64,000 nucleotides of DNA from Paraphysomonas bandaiensis (GCA_965644295.1 CBFFRP010000079.1:124170-188169), one strand, 5' to 3'. Shown: positions 3,372 to 55,100, counted from the stretch's first letter. Numbers and translations: made by a program. Notes: generated from the sequence alone by a model not told the origin.

Positions 3372-4508
3372 CATACATACATACATACATACATACATAC
3401 ATACATACATACATACATACATACATACATACATACATACATACATACATACATACATACATACATACATACATACATACATACATACATACATACATAC
3501 ATACATACATACATACATACATACATACATACATACATACATACATACATACATACATACATACATACATACATACATACATACATACATACATACATAC
3601 ATACATACATACATACATACATACATACATACATACATACATACATACATACATACATACATACATACATACATACATACATACATACATACATACATAC
3701 ATACATACATACATACATACATACATACATACATACATACATACATACATACATACATACATACATACATACATACATACATACATACATACATACATAC
3801 ATACATACATACATACATACATACATACATACATACATACATACATACATACATACATACATACATACATACATACATACATACATACATACATACATAC
3901 ATACATACATACATACATACATACATACATACATACATACATACATACATACATACATACATACATACATACATACATACATACATACATACATACATAC
4001 ATACATACATACATACATACATACATACATACATACATACATACATACATACATACATACATACATACATACATACATACATACATACATACATACATAC
4101 ATACATACATACATACATACATACATACATACATACATACATACATACATACATACATACATACATACATACATACATACATACATACATACATACATAC
4201 ATACATACATACATACATACACATACATACATACATACATACATACATACATACATACATACATACATACATACATACATACATACATACATACATACAT
4301 ACATACATACATACATACATACATACATACATACATACATACATACATACATACATACATACATACATACATACATACATACATACATACATACATACAT
4401 ACATACATACATACATACATACATACATACATACATACATACATACATACATACATACATACATACATACATACATACATACATACATACATACATACAT
4501 ACATACAT
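3372..4508. repeat. (CATA)n microsatellite, about 1.14 kb, nearly perfect
   Basis: Direct; fills almost the whole space between the divergent SmE and GH3 start codons. Confidence 0.98.
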
Positions 4509-14833: not shown

Positions 14834-15166
14834 ATACATACATACATACATACATACATACATACATACATACATACATACATACATACATACATACATA
14901 CATACATACATACATACATACATACATACATACATACATACATACATACATACATACATACATACATACATACATACATACATACATACATACATACATA
15001 CATACATACATACATACATACATACATACATACATACATACATACATACATACATACATACATACATACATACATACATACATACATACATACATACATA
15101 CATACATACATACATACATACATGCATACATACATACATACATACATACATACATACATACATACA
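14834..15166. repeat. (CATA)n microsatellite, about 330 bp
   Basis: Direct; upstream of the DOCK gene. Confidence 0.98.
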
Positions 15167-23468: not shown

Positions 23469-23784
23469 TATGTACGTATGTATGTATGTATGTATGTATG
23501 TATGTATGTATGTATGTATGTATGTATGTATGTATGTATGTATGTATGTATGTATGTATGTATGTATGTATATGTGTATGTATGTATGTACGTATGTATG
23601 TATGTATGTATGTATGTATGTATGTATGTACGTATGTATGTATGTATGTATGTATGTATGTATGTATGTATGTATGTATGTATGTATGTATGTATGTATG
23701 TATGTATGTATGTATGTGTGTATGTATGTATGTATGTATGTATGTATGTATGTATGTATGTATGTATGTATGTATGTATGTATG
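23469..23784. repeat. (TATG)n microsatellite
   Basis: Direct; upstream of the SDR gene. Confidence 0.98.
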
Positions 23785-31078: not shown

Positions 31079-34000
31079 TCATTTTTTTAGAGAGAATCTT
31101 TTTAGCATAGTTTTTTTCAGCCATCCCTGTCCTTGACATTTTTTTATCAATTCTTTTGCGCGCTCACACAAATACCCTGTTTCATGATGAGTCAAGTGCT
31201 TCAGCTGGTGAATAATATCTTTCTGTACAAGCTTTTCACGAGCAGTCTCTGATGCGCATAGAACAGATAACAGCTCTACAGAGAGCAGTTTTACATCATG
31301 AGGAATGTCATTAGTATCCAAGGGATTGCCATGCTCGTGATGAATGAGGCCAAGCAATACCTCAGGAAGGCCACTGTTAAATACCTCTTCGTGCATGTCC
31401 ATATCCTTTCCCATGATTCCAAGTACACGTCCTACTGCAATTTTCAGATCAACTGGTGCATCCCTTACGAGCAAAACTAGCAATTCAAGTCCACTTCGCA
31501 GTATATCTCGTCGCAATGATGACTCCTTCGCCAACACTCGTAACACTTTGGCTGCAGTAAGCTGCGACCCCAATCGATTCGTTGGCTGCAACGTATCTAA
31601 CAATATCGTTATTGCACCAGACTCAGCGAAAGAGTACTTGAGGTGATCGTGTGATGCCCCTTTGGCAAGAACCAATAAAATTTCGCCGGCATGCTTTACA
31701 TCTTCAGCACTTCCAGACCGAATCTTACGAATCAGGCATGATAAAACAGTTATCTGGGTGATGCTTCCTTCCCCATCCAATGCGGGATCATGCTTTAAAC
31801 TGTCCAATACCTGAAGTGCGGCAGGCGAACTAAAAAACTCTCCCTGCTTCAGAAATGTGACTAATGCAGGAATCGCGCCAGCAGCAAAAATTTCGTTCCT
31901 TAAGGTAAGGTCTTTGCACATAATTTCAAGATTCCAAAATGCAGCATACTTTTCGACTTCATCTCCATTTTCGAACAAGTTGACCATCAATAAAATTGCA
32001 TTTGTTGCTAGAAATTTATGTGAGAGTGTAACTACAAACGAGACAACTAACAAACCTAAAATGATGTCACGCAGCTCAGGCTTTTCACAAAATATTGCTA
32101 ATATCCACATCGCCTCTTCACGTTGAGCATTTGATCCATCATCAAGAAGATCAACCAATTCATTTATCATTCTGCATTAGCACCAGTCATAACAGAATGA
32201 AAAGTAAGTTATATATTCTTCTACGCTTACACATAATGTCACATCATATACATACACCAGACTAACCCTGATTGAACAATTGCTTCTAATTGAGCAGGGG
32301 TGCAATGGCGGGCCATCTTACGTAGTATGACGCCTATTCGAAAGTTACATTACGCAAATAGATCGCAATGTTACAATAATACACACCAGAACTAAATCGA
32401 ACTTTCTCGTTGCCCTCTCGAATATTTTCCAAAAACTCGTGAATAGCCTCTGCATCAAGTCTATCCTTATCGGTCTCGGAGTGACTTGCTAGCATTCCCA
32501 AAAACTGACTCGCAACAAAGTGCAATTCAGTCCCTTTTCTTAGGAGAGACACGAACTCTGGTATTGCACCTGCATCACAAAAAGCTCCTGCAGTAGTCGG
32601 GCTATCCTTCGAAAGTTCCACTACCATACGTTCAACCTGAAGCTTCAGTTTGCTATTCTCATTTTCTTTCAGCAAGTTAACCAGGTCCCTTGTCAGGTTT
32701 GAAGCTCGCAGTGCTGCTCTCGACGCCTCGTTTTTGCCAGATATTATAGCCATTATGTGAAGTGACTGTATTTTTTGTTCGTCAGTTCCTTCTCGGAAGA
32801 AAGCAATTAATTTAGGTAGTAGCTCATTTTTCACAACATCATCCTCTAAGGAAGGGTCCTGAATGACCACACGAACCGCTTTCAAGATCTGGTCACGCTG
32901 AGAAAACGAATCGGTGCGATTCACAACTAACGTATCAAATACGACTTGTCTCTGGATGGGGTCCTTAGCAAGAGCCACGAGCTTATTGGTAGCGGCGATC
33001 CTTGTGTCAGATGAGCCCCTCTTGACATTGTCCACTAACTGAGGGACAACTGATATCTACACCATAGTCAGTGCTACATATATAGATATATAGATATATA
33101 GATATATAACTTGCAAGAGCGCTAGATATATACATACATATAGGTACTTAGAAGGGCGACAGATGCATATATACACATACACAGAAAAAGATAAATAGTT
33201 ACATATACTTATATATAGAGATACTGATGTCTATAGATATACATTTACCAGGCCACTACATACATACACATATAAAGGTCTCTCTTTCTCTCTATATATA
33301 TATGTGCGTGTATATGCCTACCAGGCCACTACATACATATACATATACATATACAGGTCTGTCTCTCTATATATATGCCTACCAGGCCACTACATACATG
33401 CACATATACCGGTCTCTCTCTTTCTCTTCCTCTCTCTCTATACATGTGTATGTAAGCCTACCAGGCCACCACATACATGCACATATACCGGTCTCTCTCT
33501 TTCTCTATATGTGTGTATATGCCTACCAGGACACCATACACATACACATATACAGGTCTGCATCTACATATGTGTATATGCAGGTCTCTATGTATATACG
33601 TATATCGTTACCAGGCCACTACATACATGCACATATACAGGCCTCTCTCTCTCCCTATACATATATATATATGTATGTGTATATGCCTACCAGGCTACTA
33701 CATACATACACATATACAGGTCTCTCTCTCTCTCTCGATGCATGTGTGTATGCTTACCAGGCCACTACATACATACACATATACAGGTCTCTCTCTCTCT
33801 CTATGTATGTGTATATGCCTACCAGGCTACTACATACATACACATATACAGGTCTCTCTATGTATGTGTGTGTATATGCCTACCAGGCTACTACATACAT
33901 ACACATATACAGGTCTCTCTCTCTCTCTCTATGCATGTGTGTATGCTTACCAGGCCACTACATACATACACATATACAGGTCTCTCTCTCTATGTATGTG

Positions 34001-34413
34001 TGTGTATATGCCTACCAGGCTACTACATACATACACATATACAGGTCTCTCTCTCTCTCTATGTATGTGTGTATGCTTACCAGGCCACTACATACATACA
34101 CATATACAGGTCTCTCTCTCTCTCTATGTATGTGTGTATGCTTACCAGGCCACTACATACATACACATATACAGGTCTCTCTCTCTCTCTATGTATGTGT
34201 GTGTATATGCCTACCAGGCTACTACATACATACACATATACAGGTCTCTCTCTCTATGTGTGTGTGTATGCTTACCAGGCCCCTGGAAGAGTTTCTCTCC
34301 ACAGCTTTAATAATATCAAGATCCGACTCACATCGAACACCATTGATAGTCTTCGCCTCATATTCGACTAATGAAGGTATCTCCTCATTATCTTCTTCAA
34401 TGAAATCAGACAT
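31079..34413 (-). CDS. Armadillo-repeat protein, multi-exon
   Basis: Repeated AGAIP.LV.LL ARM motifs; exon 1 34413-34276, 1219-nt intron 34275-33057, exon 2 begins ISVVPQLVDNV in phase 0. Confidence 0.85.
33240..34281. repeat. Intronic minisatellite, about 16 units of 60-80 bp
   Basis: Unit GC(C/T)TACCAGGC(C/T)ACTACATACATACACATATACAGGTCTCTCTC..TATGTATGTGTGTAT. Confidence 0.95.
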
Positions 34414-34479
34414 CTTTCCTTCTTAATGTATAGTACGACTGCTCTTAAGGCTTATATAGAGATATGTGTGTATCTATGT

Positions 34480-34710
34480 GTATGTATGTATGTATGTATG
34501 TATGTATGTATCTATGTGTATGTATGTATGTATGTATGTATGTATGTATGTATGTATGTATGTATGTATGTATGTATGTATGTATGTATGTATGTATGTA
34601 TGTATGTATGTATGTATGTATGTATGTATGTATGTATGTATGTATGTATGTATGTATGTATGTATGTATGTATGTATGTCTAGATGTATGTATGTATGTA
34701 TGTATGTATG
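34480..34710. repeat. (TATG)n microsatellite, left flank of the Crypton-like element
   Basis: Direct. Confidence 0.98.
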
Positions 34711-36949
34711 GACTGCATATGTGAAACTCTGTGGGTTTTTTCCTCATCTAGAAACCCCACCTGTGAAAGGAAATGTTTCACATATGCCTCGAATACGGAT
34801 GAATATATAGTAGATAATCATATTCCATCCATATGTGAAATATTTCCTTTCACAGAAAAATCGGCACTTTTTTATGAGGAAACTACAACTTTATAGGGAA
34901 ATAGCCACTTTATTAGTTGTAAAACACTGTTAGAATACTCTACTATTCTCCTTGAACGTCACAGCCGTTAGTGGCATATATCAATATTCGACCATACTTA
35001 CTGCAAACATGAGTGAGACAGATTCAGACAGGGAGGAAGCGTTGCTTCAATAGTGAAGAGGAAGTGGCCGTGTACGCCGACAGCCGGTTGTGTCTGTTGA
35101 CTCCAATGCTGATAATGTATCTGACTATAAGAATTAACGAACAAAAGGAGGAATGAAAGCAGCATACAAGAAAAAGGTTGGCCATATTGTAGCGTGGTGT
35201 ATAAAAGCGTACCCTGAAGCTCTGATGATGATGAAAATTTGAAGATTCTATTCCCGAAAGACATCTGTCTTGAGTACTTCGGCCATCTGTTCACACCGGC
35301 TCACGTAGGAGCGAAAGAGGGAAGCTAAGGGCCCCAGATGACATTCCAGAAAGTGAATCTGACCCCCCTAGTAGATCCCACATTAAGGGATATAGAAGCC
35401 CTATAGTCTACTTATATACCTTAAGAAATATGAAGCTGGACGTGGATGTAATCTTAGACTTAGAACTAAGCCAGGCGATAGATGGCTATGAGAAAGACAT
35501 GAGAACTCATGAAACCAGAAGTGGGTAAAAGTCCGTTTAAAATGAATGGCTATAAAATTTTAGCGACGAATATGATGTTGATGGTTCCCTGTGCTATTGC
35601 AGGCAGTTGGTCCTATATCTTGTTCATGTGGGCATATTTTGTACTGATGTGGAATATAATGAGTAGATCTGATTCAGTAGCTTGATTGATGTTTGAATAT
35701 TTTGACTGGAGAGGTGATGCAATGCTTGTTCAAGAGCAAGGAGACACAAACTGGACAAAAAGACTAGTAATGAAACATTCTCTAGTGCGCTGGATATAAT
35801 TTTGAATCATATCGTAAGTGTTCATAAGTTAAAGCAGATGGATAGAGTTTCGTACGGTAGCTTGTACAATGCAATCTGCAAGTTGAAATGTGTATGGAAT
35901 GATATATGTCACTTATTTAAATTTAAGCAGTAGAAATCAAAGAACTCTTGACAAACAGCTCTATAAGGCTGACAAATATGTATATATGTTGTCAGTGGAT
36001 ATGTTATGACATTATGTGATATACGATATACTTACATCTACATCGGCACCTTCATCTTGATGAAGGATTAGTAGACAGCTCTACATTACAGTGTCTGATA
36101 AACACTGATGCTAATATATGATATAAGTTGTAAGTAAGTGGTAAGTGGATACGTATGCTATAGCATTATGTAATATACGATATACATCCATCTCTTATCT
36201 ACGACAGCACCTTCATCTTGATGAATGATATATGTAAACCTCAGTCATATTTACAGGACACAACAGATCATTACGAATGATACAGCATTAGGAGTCATAT
36301 GGTCGACAGGCTCTTCACTGGTTGGGTCGTAAGAGGCGTCCCTATACCACATACATACACTCCCACCACCCCCACAACTCATCCACACTCTCATATTACT
36401 CATATGCCATCCTTATAGAGGAAGCCCTCATATGGATGATCACCACCAGCTGCACTAACAACAGCGTCACAGTCTTCTAACGGATACTATGCTTCCACAG
36501 CACCATTAATGCAGATACACCATATAAAATAACATACTCAGAAGCGCATTAGTGGCGAAGGCTTCTGGTACAGTTATATGACTATTCAGGGTGCTCCATG
36601 CGGTCTATGCATGTATATGTGTGTGGGTGTTCTGTATGTATGTGTGTGTATCTGCTGCGGTATTATTCATATGATCATACGAGTCTCTCTCCTCATGAGG
36701 AGCACACACCACTAAACACCCCTATGACTACACACTGTTGATAGTCCTCACTCGTGTCTGTGAGTAGAGGCAGCAGCAGAGCCTCTGAATCATGTACTCA
36801 TATATGCATATATCCATATCACATTCACTTCGAAGTCACCCAGAGATATACACTCATATACGCACACGTATACCTATGTATACCATATACACAGTATACA
36901 GAGAATACGTTGATTCACAGTTGTAGTAAAAAGTTTCACATATGCACTC
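34711..36949 (+). mobile_element. Decayed CryptonS-like tyrosine-recombinase DNA transposon
   Basis: Broken frames IKGYRSPIVYLY...GKSPFKMNGYKILA...FMWAYFVLMWNIMSRSDSVA*LMFEYFDWRGDAMLV (about 35380-35750); 18-bp inverted arms (17/18 identical) at 34711-28 and 36932-49; TATGG at the left junction. Confidence 0.7.
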
Positions 36950-36951
36950 AT

Positions 36952-36953
<2 letters not shown>

Positions 36954-36983
<30 letters not shown>

Positions 36984-37481
36984 TGTATGTATGTATGTAT
37001 GTATGTATGTATGTATGTATGTATGTATGTATGTATGTATGTATGTATGTATGTATGTATGTATTTATGTATGTATGTATGTATGTATGTATGTATGTAT
37101 GTATGTATGTATGTATGTATGTATGTATGTATGTATGTATGTATGTATGTATGTATGTATGTATGTATGTATGTATGTATGTATGTATGTATGTATGTAT
37201 GTATGTATGTATGTATGTATGTATGTATGTATGTGTGTATGTATGTATGTATGTGTGTATGTATGTATGTATGTATGTATGTATGTATGTATGTATGTAT
37301 GTATGTATGTATGTATGTATGTATGTATGTATGTATGTATGTATGTATGTATGTATGTATGTATGTATGTATGTATGTATGTATGTATGTATGTATGTAT
37401 GTATGTATGTATGTATGTATGTATGTATGTATGTATGTATGTATGTATGTATGTATGTATGTATGTATGTATGTATGTATG
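36954..37481. repeat. (TATG)n microsatellite, right flank of the Crypton-like element
   Basis: Direct; same orientation as the left tract. Confidence 0.98.
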
Positions 37482-37949: not shown

Positions 37950-39433
37950 ATGCCAAAACGATCTCAATTACCTTCCTCTAACCCTCCAGATATCCCTGTA
38001 ACGGTCTTATCAGGGTTCTTAGGCGCAGGTATGATATATACACATATATATACACATATCACATATACTCTATAGGGAAAACTACAATACTAAATAATGT
38101 ATTAAATAATATGGAAGGAAAACGTGTTGCTGTAATTGTTAATGATATGAGTGAGATTAATATTGATGCCATGCTAGTGACACGAACAACAGAGAAGATG
38201 ATTGAGTTATCGAATGGTTGTATATGTTGTACACTACGTGAAGATTTATTGAATCAATTAATGGATCTTGGTGAGAAAGCAACATGTGATTATATTATGA
38301 TAGAGAGTACTGGTATTGCAGAACCATTACATATTGCTGAAACATTTGCATATGCAGATGAAACTAAAAAGAGTTCAGCTGGTAGTAGAGTGGTTCGACT
38401 TGATACCATGGTAACTGTTGTAGACTTGCAAACTTTTTTCCTTCACTTTAATGACACGGATAAAAACTACAATATGCCTGGTGCTGATGGTAGTGTTCCT
38501 TGTGATGTCCCCTCTGATGAAGACCGCACTCTCTCGCACCTCCTCATTGACCAAGTTCAGTTTGCTGACATCGTTATCCTTAACAAATGCGATCTAGTTA
38601 GTTCTCAGGAAGCAATGGATGTAGAGGGCGTTGTGAAGGACCTTAACCCTCATGCCCGCATTATTCGGTCATCGTATGGAAGCAATATACCCACATCTGA
38701 CGTTGTGGCCACTGGGCTCTTCTCTTTTGAGAAGGCGGAACGTAATGCTCAGTGGCTACAGGAGGAATGGGGTTCGGGTGCAGTTGTACCAGAGACAGAG
38801 GAATATGGCATTTCTAGTCGTTCGTTTCAGTCGTACGACAGACCGTTTCACCCTGAGAGACTGTACAATTTTTATGCGTCTCGTGTACTGTCTCGATCCA
38901 AAGCGTCCACTCTCACCAAGTCTACCAAAGGTACTTCGAGTTGTCGTCTTCTCCGCTCTAAAGGTTTCCTTTGGTTGGCCACTAGTCATAATAGATTCTG
39001 CACCCTGCATCATACTGGCGGCTCATTTGCACTGAAGCACGGTAACAAATGGTGGGCCGAAGTGGCCCCAAGCGAAAGGCCAAACAGCGAGGAGTTTGAA
39101 GCAGAGGTTGGCGTGCGAATCAAATCCTCAAAGTACGGCGACAGAGGTAGTACCGTGGTGCTTATTGGCCAGCACATGATGGAGGCGGACTGGAAGAAAT
39201 GTTTAGCTGACTTGGATGCTTGCCTTCTGTCCGACAAAGAGATGGTTCTAGGGCCTTCTAAGTGGAAGTCCTTCACGGACCCGTTTGCAGCAAACAACGC
39301 TGGAGCTGAAGAACAACAGCAGAAAAAGAGTGGTAAGAAGAGAAAATCAGAAGCAGAGTTGCTCTGTGAGGACAGTCAAAGCATGGGGTTGACATCTGCC
39401 CATGGGAGAAAGTTACGAGCTCGTCAATCGTGA
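37950..39433 (+). CDS. CobW/COG0523 G3E GTPase (zinc metallochaperone, ZNG1/YciC-like), 2 exons
   Basis: Exon 1 PVTVLSGFLGAG|KTT Walker A; NGCICCTLR; ESTG; NKCD; PETEEYGISS; RPFHPERL; RSKGFLWLA; YGDR..VLIG. Confidence 0.95.
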
Positions 39434-51406: not shown

Positions 51407-51515
<109 letters not shown>

Positions 51516-52133: not shown

Positions 52134-55100
52134 ATGCTGCATGAGTTGTGTCTGTTCCTCTGCGTGGCTGTTATGGGATATCAACCATCTCAAGGTAATG
52201 GTTCGTGTTATCAAACTAACATAATGATCATATGATTGATTAGGCCATAATATATCGGAGTTACATCGTCACTTATCTCATCAACAACAACTCTATTCGC
52301 TCACTTATATAGCTGGAAACGGTGAAGAGGGACACTATGATGCGATTGGGACAAACTCAAAGTTTATCCGACCCGGAGCCGTGAAGTTATACTCCTCGGA
52401 TCAATATGCATTGATTGGTGAATATACCCGCATACGTAAGATCGATATGGCTACAATGACAGCATCCACTGTGGCTGGAAATGGATTCAATGGTAACACT
52501 GATGGTGTTGGAACCCTTGCACAGTTTGTGTCACCATATGGATTAGCGATATCTTCGGACAATAGCTTCGCAGTGGTGGCTGACTTTAGCAGTCATTACA
52601 TACGACTATTGCTGTTATCATCTCGACAAGTTGTTACTCTTCATCCTGACGGTTCTGGGGGTGGATCGCAGGACGGTGGATCAGCATCTAGTTTCAATAG
52701 CCCACGTGATATTGTGCTATCAGCAGATGACTCGTATGCCCTCATTGCCGATAGAAATAATAATCGAATTCAGAAATTAGTTCTGACAAACAAGGTGGTT
52801 ACTACTGTTGCAGGAGGCTCCAATGGAAATGCCGATGGTATTGGTACAAATGCTCAATTTAATAATCCTTTTGGTATGTGCATGTCCTCTGACAAATCTT
52901 TTGTGTTGATAACAGAACTCGCGGGTTATCGTGTACGTAAGTTGGTATTATCGACATCTATGGTTACTACCATTGCAGGATCTGGTTCGCTTGGTATGTT
53001 GGATGGTGTAGGAACTTCAGCTACTTTTTCGTCCCCATCATCGGTGGTCCTTTCCCAATCGGATACTGTGGCATATGTGTCTGACCTAGGTGGACATGCC
53101 ATTCGACACATTGATATGGTTACCCTGCAGGTGACAAGGGTCGTTGGAACCATGGCCGATGAGAATGTGGAAGGTGTAGGTACAAATGCTTCAATTTTAG
53201 GCCCATTTTCCCTTGACATTTCTGATGACGAGTCATTCATATTAGTTTGTAGTATGTTTGGCCATCGTATTGCCAAGGTCAGTGTACTTCCCACTTTTCC
53301 CACTACTTTACCTACAAGTGCTCCCACGATTTCACCGTATACTGCTACTGAAAGGAACGTGTTATGCCAAATGGTATCTTCCACGAATATTGGGAGTATA
53401 TTCTCAGAATGGGTATGTGGGGCCCCTGACTGGTGCATGTGGACAGGAATTACATGTGAGGAGTCGTCTATTGCTCAAATTTTGTTGGCATCAAGTTCTT
53501 TGACGGGTACTATCCCGTCATCTGTTGGGCTTTTGACTAAGCTCGTGATTCTCAACATGGGCTTTAATAGTTTGACCGGATCCTTGCCCAGTTCTTTATC
53601 AAATATGTCGAAGTTATCCTATCTAGATTTATCCAGAAACTTACTTTCTGGCTCCATACCATCCAATATTGATTTGATGACCAGTTTAGAGACGATGGAT
53701 TTGAGTAGAAATATGCTTCATGGCGAGATCCCTCATTTTAGTGGACAAATGAGCGCATTGTTGGTGTTGAAGTTGAATCATAACTCTTTATCTGGAATGA
53801 TACCATCAAGCTTGTCATACATCAGCTCTTTGTCCGATATATCTTTGTCACAAAATAGACTCACTGGAGCTATTCCATCCGAACTGGGTGATCTGAATTC
53901 GATTTATCGTATTCGTGCCTGGAACAACAGACTATCTGGAACACTTCCCTCCTCACTTGGAAAGCTTCATCGTTTGAATGTACTGCGCCTCGATAATAAT
54001 ACACTGACTGGAACAATTCCAAGCTCATATACAAGTTTGATATCAATGAGGGTTTTTACCGTGAACGATAATAAAATTCGTTCGATTTTTCCATATGAAA
54101 TGTGCGACATGAAGAATTTATCTTATTTTTACCTTTCTCAGACAGGCGCGCATGAATGCAGTATTCCAACTGCTATACCAACCCCACAACCAACGAGTAT
54201 CCCCTCAGGTAATCCGTCATTTCAACCTACCGCACAACCCACAGTACGGCCCAGTGAAGCTCCGTCGAATGAGCCCACTGGTGAGCCTTCAATGTATCCC
54301 ACTGGCGAGCCGTCAGGAAAACCTACTGGAACACCTTCAGGTATTCCCACTAGATTACCATCTGGTGAGCCTACCGGCATACCATCAGTACAGCCAAGTG
54401 GTGCACCCTCTGGTCAACCTACTTCGATACCATCAGGGCTGCCTACTGGGACACCGTCAGGACAGCCTACTGCGGTTCCAACAGGTCAACCCTCCTGTCA
54501 GCCAACTGGAATACCGTCAGAACAGCCAAGTGGTGCACCGTCAGTACAGCCTACTGGTCAACCAACTGGGACACCGTCAGGACAGCCTACTGCGCTACCG
54601 ACAGGTCAACCCTCTGGTCAGCCAACTGGAATACCGTCAGAACAGCCAAGTGGTGCACCGTCAGTACAGCCAAGTGGTGCACCCACTGGTCAACCAACTG
54701 GGACACCGTCAGGACAGCCCACTGCGCCACCGACAGGTCAACCCTCTGGTCAGCCTACTTGGATACCATCTGGGCTGCCTACTGGACAGCCTTCTGGAAT
54801 ACCGTCAGAACAGCCAAGTGGTGCACCGTCAGTACAGCCTACTGGATGGCCTACTGGGACACCGTCAGGTCAACCCTCTGGTCAGCCTACTTCGACACCA
54901 TCAGGGCTGCCTACTGGTCAACCTACAGGGACACCGTCAGTACAGCCTACTACGGTACCGACAGGTCAACCCACTGGGCAGCCTTCTGGAATGCCGTCAG
55001 GACAGCCAAGTGGTGCACCTACTGGTCAACCAACTGGGACACCGTCAGGACAGCCTACTGCGCTACCGACAGGTCAACCCTCTGGTCAGCCCACTTGGAT

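Follow-up and report, generated by a model that had tools for sequence, protein, structure and literature searches.

The segment between positions 34711 and 36953 of a 64,000-nt stretch of Paraphysomonas bandaiensis DNA (CBFFRP010000079.1:124170-188169; hereafter the window, whose positions are used below) lies within a (TATG)n microsatellite. With a probability of about 85%, we read this segment as a decayed copy of a CryptonS-type transposon that became non-autonomous through deletion, placed there by exchange in an 8-bp core within (TATG)n. CryptonS elements are DNA transposons with a tyrosine recombinase as the sole gene. The assignment to CryptonS rests on the published defining features of this group and on the host range of the homologues described below.

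Ends, copies and target word of the element

The element is bordered by a left (TATG)n array (34463..34710, + strand; 63 units, 91% matches, few interruptions) and a right (TATG)132 array (36954..37481, + strand; 132 units, 98% matches). Both arrays lie on one strand and in one register, with a 2,240-bp non-repeat segment (34711-36950) between them, in agreement with the initial annotation of this DNA, which had described a co-oriented (TATG)n array split by a segment of about 2.24 kb. The closing 8 bases of the left array (34703-34710) and the opening 8 bases of the right array are copies of TATGTATG, the putative crossover core. The element itself runs on the + strand from GACTGC to GCACTCATTA (34711..36953; 2,243 bp), that is, the non-repeat segment plus TTA, which was included because it also belongs to the head-to-tail junction described below. 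The left terminal arm GACTGCATATGTGAAACT (34711..34728, + strand) holds the 13-mer GCATATGTGAAAC at 34715-34727 (site L1). The right terminal arm (36933..36953, - strand) is made up of a 13-mer that is inverted relative to L1 (site R1, 36933-36945) and of ACTCATTA. Inverted arms of 18 bp had been described at the ends, and GACTGCATATGTGAAACT and AGTTTCACATATGCACTC (36933-36950) were complementary at 17 of 18 positions, with an extended pair of 25 nt at 84%. The left junction, TATG/GACTGC, gives the described TATGG directly. Moreover, each copy has TATGTATG (at least TATG) at its two ends, with a single occurrence per tandem junction, as direct repeats that the target also contains; Cryptons in general have terminal repeats of this kind, of 4-6 bp. 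DIRS-like retroelements, Helitrons and terminal inverted repeat (TIR) transposons were considered as well and rejected, because reverse transcriptase (RT) and Rep genes were absent, the repeats at the ends are short, direct and also present in the target, and no target-site duplication extended beyond the shared core.

Further copies were sought in the genome (62.6 Mb, 669 contigs). At least 10 full-length copies with the same ends and 92-96% identity were found on various contigs, together with many partial copies. The full-length copies run from GACTGC to GCACTCA, after which comes TTATATGTATG, and their termini are identical between loci. A subfamily of 2.29 kb, designated 1b, has element positions 1-580, 751-1047 and 1472-2240 in common. 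The exact 15-nt left arm occurred 39 times in the genome and its reversed control not once; with the repeated 13-mer, this indicates that the pattern is not due to chance. Exact TATGTATG stood directly before 37 of the 39 left arms, and the remaining two differed by one base. When tandem junctions were removed and the window was counted, about 23 independent left ends were obtained, and about 19 of them adjoin long (TATG)n. The flanks of the genomic arm copies had been set beforehand as the test of a link with this microsatellite, and the link withstood it. At four independent left ends (C360, C440, C186 and C290), only 2-6 TATG units were present, followed by unique DNA, and these short-unit insertions define a minimal target of about two TATG units. 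Among copies with a recognisable right arm at loci other than C186 and C440, the right ends always read CACTCA/TTATATGTATG, followed either by a long array or by 3-8 units and unique DNA. The orientation of the element relative to the TATG strand was constant.

Head-to-tail arrays of the element were found on C357 (at least three units), C432 and C482, and those of subfamily 1b on C53, C71, C290 and C342. The units are spaced by exactly TTATATGTATG, and the junction, right arm-ATTA-TATGTATG-left arm, is the same in all seven arrays, reading TATGTATGG. By analogy, this junction may be regarded as an attP-like site; such junctions in the genome are not proof of free circles. Two 85-bp mini-copies (C290:49225-49309 and 52550-52634) were also observed, consisting of the first ~77 nt of the element and the right-end tail, and their coordinates would fit a deletion between the directly repeated L2 (see below) and R1, which are alike over 17 nt. 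The loci L008 (C279) and L010 (C149) have their right flank in common, with different left flanks and a divergence of several percent; they probably represent haplotigs or the duplication of one locus, with unequal microsatellite lengths. A non-mobile macrosatellite or segmental duplication of 2.25 kb, bordered by the microsatellite by chance, would account for the many head-to-tail copies and perhaps for this last pair of loci. Against this stand more than 20 loci with differing unique flanks and identical termini, the recombinase relic inside the unit together with its intact relatives, and the presence of the family in sequencing runs labelled as other organisms (it was multi-copy in all four runs checked, under three organism labels). 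We consider such an origin close to negligible.

The concentration of insertions in (TATG)n was then compared with the distribution of the target word. On both strands of the window, 663 of 709 TATGTATG words (94%) lie within arrays. Given the 8-bp core, a preference for the microsatellite is as predicted, and the element need not have made the arrays. Hence, of the microsatellite targeting proposed in the initial annotation, the concentration of insertions in arrays stands, whereas recognition of the microsatellite as such is dispensable, since the 8-bp core explains the pattern. The initial annotation had also suggested that the element seeds or expands the arrays; in this form, the TATGTATG copies at both ends would have been seeds that grew by slippage. 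The number of flanking units does vary, with 2-6 at some insertions and more than 100 at others, and some flanks are asymmetric, as on C149 and C432, with at least 37 units on the left versus 3-8 on the right. However, such asymmetry would also follow from random integration within an array, and the share of insertions in arrays (~83%) is as predicted by the share of window target words there. Moreover, the window has long (TATG)n/(CATA)n arrays at four other places (893-1140, 3372-4505, 14837-15164 and 23477-23784), none of which contains an element, and the largest of them, 3372-4505, comprises ~283 units over 1.1 kb. Genome-wide, 826 starts of perfect (TATG)n runs of at least 8 units were counted versus about 25 family loci; the reversed repeat is the same repeat backwards and hence provides no control for this count. 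Creation or expansion of the microsatellite by the element is thus unlikely. These four long arrays and the two flanking ones together make up about 4.4% of the window, far over the genome average implied by the 826 runs.

The recombinase relic and its intact relatives

A recombinase gene relic was located at 35138..35796 (+ strand), in three frames with stops. Translation showed all the peptide motifs that had been listed for a frameshifted open reading frame (ORF), namely GYRSPIVYLY, GKSP, WNIMSRSDSV and W.GDA, in three different frames with frameshifts and stops between them. By tblastn, the relic aligned to residues 81-261 of an intact 644-aa protein encoded at L043:4389-6323 (E 4e-18), and a less decayed sister copy showed 46% identity to this protein over 153 aa (E 8.5e-41). 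A six-frame genome search with a 60-aa piece of the relic returned sister copies and the 644-aa open frame, on contig C645, at 45% identity. No further ORF with a family match was present in the window element. Its 3′ part (35800..36932, + strand) is non-coding and, from ~36182 on, common with subfamily 1b (95%).

The relic covers the N-terminal core-binding half through the first catalytic Arg (WNIMSRSDSV), and the part with the K, HxxR, H/W and Y residues is deleted. The catalytic set of tyrosine recombinases, R...H-x-x-R...Y, is complete in the intact relative and not in the window copy. The family copies examined all end at about residue 261-275, and in subfamily 1b the coding sequence then resumes at 591-644. 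Judged from the sequences, the catalytic domain appears to have been deleted throughout the family, the window copy being a non-autonomous deletion derivative. This copy carries extra stops compared with the sister copies and is older and dead. The proposal of a Crypton element is therefore upheld by TATGG and by homology to an intact recombinase, but the description of its gene as merely frameshifted is not, since the catalytic domain is lost beyond the first Arg.

The intact relative on C645 is an element of ~3.27 kb (L043:4126-7398) with the 644-aa ORF as its single gene. Neither this relative nor a second intact one gave a Pfam match to RT, GCR1_C or DUF3504. In total, 104 homologues of the 644-aa protein were found, and the named ones were nearly all from stramenopiles (Phytophthora, Aphanomyces, Achlya, Lagenidium, Thraustotheca and Ectocarpus); one UniRef homologue is named 'Ndc10 domain-containing'. 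In an alignment of 29 sequences, R236, K263, H348, R351 and Y385 were invariant or nearly so and the R-K-H-R-(H/W)-Y set was kept, in the blocks WNLM.RS, KGDQ.G, THS.RKG, RAGWSLG and KDRYI. The same alignment showed a conserved C-terminal block, W..G...H.VP..W.FP...WDLW..G...IRPYR, a fragment of which is kept in subfamily 1b (L022, residues 591-644). An AlphaFold (AF2) model of the 644-aa protein had a predicted local distance difference test score (pLDDT) of 80.3, and a fold search with this model returned only tyrosine recombinases and their kin, namely Cre (probability 1.00; template modelling (TM) score by target 0.57-0.64), XerH, Flp, lambda Int and yeast Ndc10. By modelled fold and catalytic residues, the 644-aa protein is predicted to be a tyrosine recombinase. 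The similarity to tyrosine recombinases and Cryptons that had been expected of the window peptide is thereby borne out through its homology to this protein.

Many other intact Crypton-like recombinase genes, encoding 560-790 aa and belonging to several lineages, were found in the genome. Locus L045 (C437:78000-87106) holds three head-to-tail units of 2,915 bp with ORFs of 740, 740 and 563 aa, the third running off the contig; the proteins are 31% identical to the C645 protein, and the spacer carries paired TGTGTAATT/AATTACACA motifs. It is a third family, in a tandem array of autonomous-size units. At L044 (C26:58000-67999), three neighbouring recombinase gene copies with ORFs of 773, 413 and 308 aa have identical N-termini, so that an apparently intact copy lies beside truncated ones. 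An ENA marine metagenome scaffold of 6,261 bp (L082) encodes the same 741-aa homologue twice, in identical copies at a distance of 3,563 bp, which points to a Crypton in tandem or one assembled as a circle; the spacer contains paired TGTGATA../..TATCACA motifs.

Candidate binding sites and a model of integration

The 13-mer GCATATGTGAAAC was present in three exact copies in the element, with a fourth copy carrying two mismatches, and no other exact copy was found in the window. Besides L1 and R1 in the terminal arms, there are two sub-terminal copies: L2 (34775..34787, - strand) repeats L1 exactly in inverted orientation, with 60 nt between the two starts, and L3 (34829..34841, + strand), which reads CCATATGTGAAAT, is the copy with two mismatches. 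L2 and L3 lie inside a 35-nt inverted repeat pair (34761-34795 and 34821-34855). The positions of the 13-mers are identical in all family copies. In subfamily 1b, GCATATGTGAAGC stands at each of the four positions, with unchanged spacing, so that the four sites have changed in concert. This concerted change between subfamilies argues for a function of the 13-mers or for their homogenisation by a common process.

Joining the two ends had been predicted to give an arm-core-arm geometry, and this joined form is present as the head-to-tail junction. In it, 12 bp separate the symmetric inverted arms and 20 bp the repeated 13-mers, and 8 bp are identical to the target. The comparison of the arms with lox is therefore only partly apt: the arms are inverted (17/18), but the 6-8-bp spacing of lox is replaced by 12 bp. 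The joined site and (TATG)n share only the 8-mer TATGTATG, so that the exchange can be placed within it, as an inferred position.

A comparable layout was found in the C645 family, which shows 45% protein identity to the window family. It has four sites in the same arrangement, CCGTAGGTGAAAT, GTTTCACCTACGC, CCGTACGTGAAAT and ATTTCACGTAC, built on ..GTGAAAT, and a crossover word of its own, TATATATATG. Its tandem junction reads CGCATTG-TATATATATG-CACCG. The family is flanked by short runs of TA that close with TG. Non-autonomous derivatives of 1.95 kb belonging to this family form head-to-tail arrays on C67 and C111. In two metagenomic relatives, paired short inverted motifs were likewise seen close to the ends.

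Under the Crypton model of Goodwin and Kojima, the element would move as a circle bearing the right arm-ATTA-TATGTATG-left arm junction. A recombinase supplied in trans would bind the 13-mers, with R1 and L1 around the core and L2 and L3 as accessory sites, and strand exchange would take place inside the 8-bp TATGTATG core with an identical chromosomal 8-mer. Each register of (TATG)n would be a target, and most insertions would fall in arrays, since over 90% of the TATGTATG words are located there. Integration would occur in one orientation each time and leave (TATG)n on both sides, and integration at the junction of a resident copy would give head-to-tail arrays.

Recombinase catalysis is dispensed with if circles carrying TATGTATG entered the arrays through microhomology-mediated repair or template switching, the relic being incidental. 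A crossover in 8 bp of identity would give the same product by either mechanism, and the assembly contains no enzyme of the window family. However, 37 of the 39 junctions are base-precise with a single orientation throughout, and the four 13-mers, conserved as sites, differ jointly from one subfamily to the other. The C645 family, whose recombinase is intact, has the same end architecture around its own core, and published active Cryptons act site-specifically. These points make entry by repair very unlikely.

Several results weigh against a CryptonS-type element that uses core exchange. The 12 bp between the symmetric arms exceed the classical overlap of 6-8 bp. Pfam returned no family for five ORF pieces of the relic or for two intact relatives, and sequence and profile searches of the PDB stayed sub-threshold (QRICH1, E 0.18; Ndc10/CBF3A, E 0.24). 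No autonomous master copy with these arms was found by genome searches with the N-terminal and catalytic halves, by tblastn on the loci or by arm pairing. When exact left and right arms were paired on each contig, the units measured 2.2-2.43 kb, apart from a single 1.2-kb unit and two of 85 bp, none being longer than ~2.43 kb, and contigs with unpaired arms were absent among the catalytic-domain matches. Two scans of metagenome contigs, one with the exact arm and one with the peptide, were blank. Finally, read contigs of 100-350 nt, which cannot bridge the arrays, gave no sign of a circle, an excision or an empty allele.

Genomic setting and relation to known systems

The insertion site lies in a 5-kb divergent intergenic spacer between an ARM-repeat gene (31079-33035, - strand), which forms its left border, and a CobW-family GTPase gene (38111-39433, + strand), which forms its right border. 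A promoter role of this region is plausible from its geometry alone. The flanking gene region was also found in marine metatranscriptomes and in sequencing runs under several organism labels. In the same spacer, directly left of the microsatellite, a 65-bp satellite of ~15 copies (33246-34281; 75-88% matches) was observed, the unit of which holds TATGTATGTG, (CT)n and CATACATACACATATACA. Another tetranucleotide repeat, a perfect (ATAG)26 array, lies at 51411-51514 of the window.

CryptonS elements have been described with terminal direct repeats of 5-6 bp and mostly TATGG termini, without GCR1_C and with a conserved C-terminal region (Kojima & Jurka 2011, PMC3212892). All of these features fit here, TATGG termini having been known since 2011. 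As in the CryptonS elements of oomycetes and Phaeodactylum, the intact relatives have the recombinase as the sole gene, lack GCR1_C and keep the C-terminal region, and the window family shares the short terminal direct repeats, the TATGG terminus and the stramenopile relatives. In contrast to these elements, the window family consists entirely of non-autonomous derivatives with internal deletions, uses an 8-bp shared word, TATGTATG, at mainly (TATG)n sites, and forms head-to-tail arrays; the window element further differs by inverted terminal arms (17/18) and two sub-terminal copies of the 13-mer. In the 2011 survey, non-autonomous Cryptons were given for CryptonI only, Cryptons were described without TIRs, and no conserved nucleotide features were reported (PMC3212892). 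The main text of that survey does not mention microsatellites, no link between Cryptons and microsatellite targets was found in the Crypton literature examined, and a full-text literature search found no publication joining a TATG microsatellite with a tyrosine recombinase.

The active CryptonF-1_cRei of Chlamydomonas has the terminal word CACCG and the target CAYCG, and excises cleanly (PMC9977147). Its short terminal word, matched to a near-identical target, resembles the situation described here and backs a model of site-specific recombination; in contrast to the window family, it belongs to another Crypton group, is autonomous and active, and has a 5-bp target in unique DNA rather than in a simple repeat. 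The intact relative is predicted to share with Cre and lambda Int a Cre-like two-domain fold and the catalytic residues. As in loxP, inverted arms surround an asymmetric putative core, which would fix the orientation. The additional sub-terminal sites recall, by analogy, the arm-type or accessory sites of lambda attP. Unlike in Cre/loxP, the arms are 12 rather than 8 bp apart, and arms of this kind are absent from the chromosomal partner, (TATG)n. Simple repeats also serve the Chlamys Penelope-like elements, which have a (C)n target (PMC9977147), as abundant and probably low-cost landing sites; those retroelements use target-primed reverse transcription, whereas conservative site-specific recombination is proposed here.

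The window itself shows an ordinary outcome, in that a dead copy of a transposon lies within an intergenic repeat. As far as could be found, the combination of an 8-bp core, a fixed orientation, tandem multimers and four co-varying 13-mers is an undescribed detail of a known transposon class. The target choice of Cryptons and the DNA bound by their recombinases are poorly known, and activity was first seen only in Chlamydomonas. The present family offers a natural data set, with dozens of base-precise junctions, a joined site in tandem arrays and a minimal target that comes down to 8 bp. Its four candidate binding sites vary together from one subfamily to the other, and they recur in the C645 family, whose enzyme is still intact. 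The question of target choice is thereby open to direct testing, and the pile-up of copies in one kind of microsatellite is explained. More tentatively, and at somewhat less than even odds, there may be a guild of CryptonS families, each with its core matched to a simple-sequence word (TATGTATG or TATATATATG), for which microsatellites would serve as multi-register, low-cost landing pads and which would form multimers by repeated integration. The conserved, co-varying four-site layout (R1, core, L1, L2, L3) would then be the first attP-like site to have been defined in a eukaryotic Crypton, and these families would provide a natural recombinase/site pair aimed at a microsatellite.

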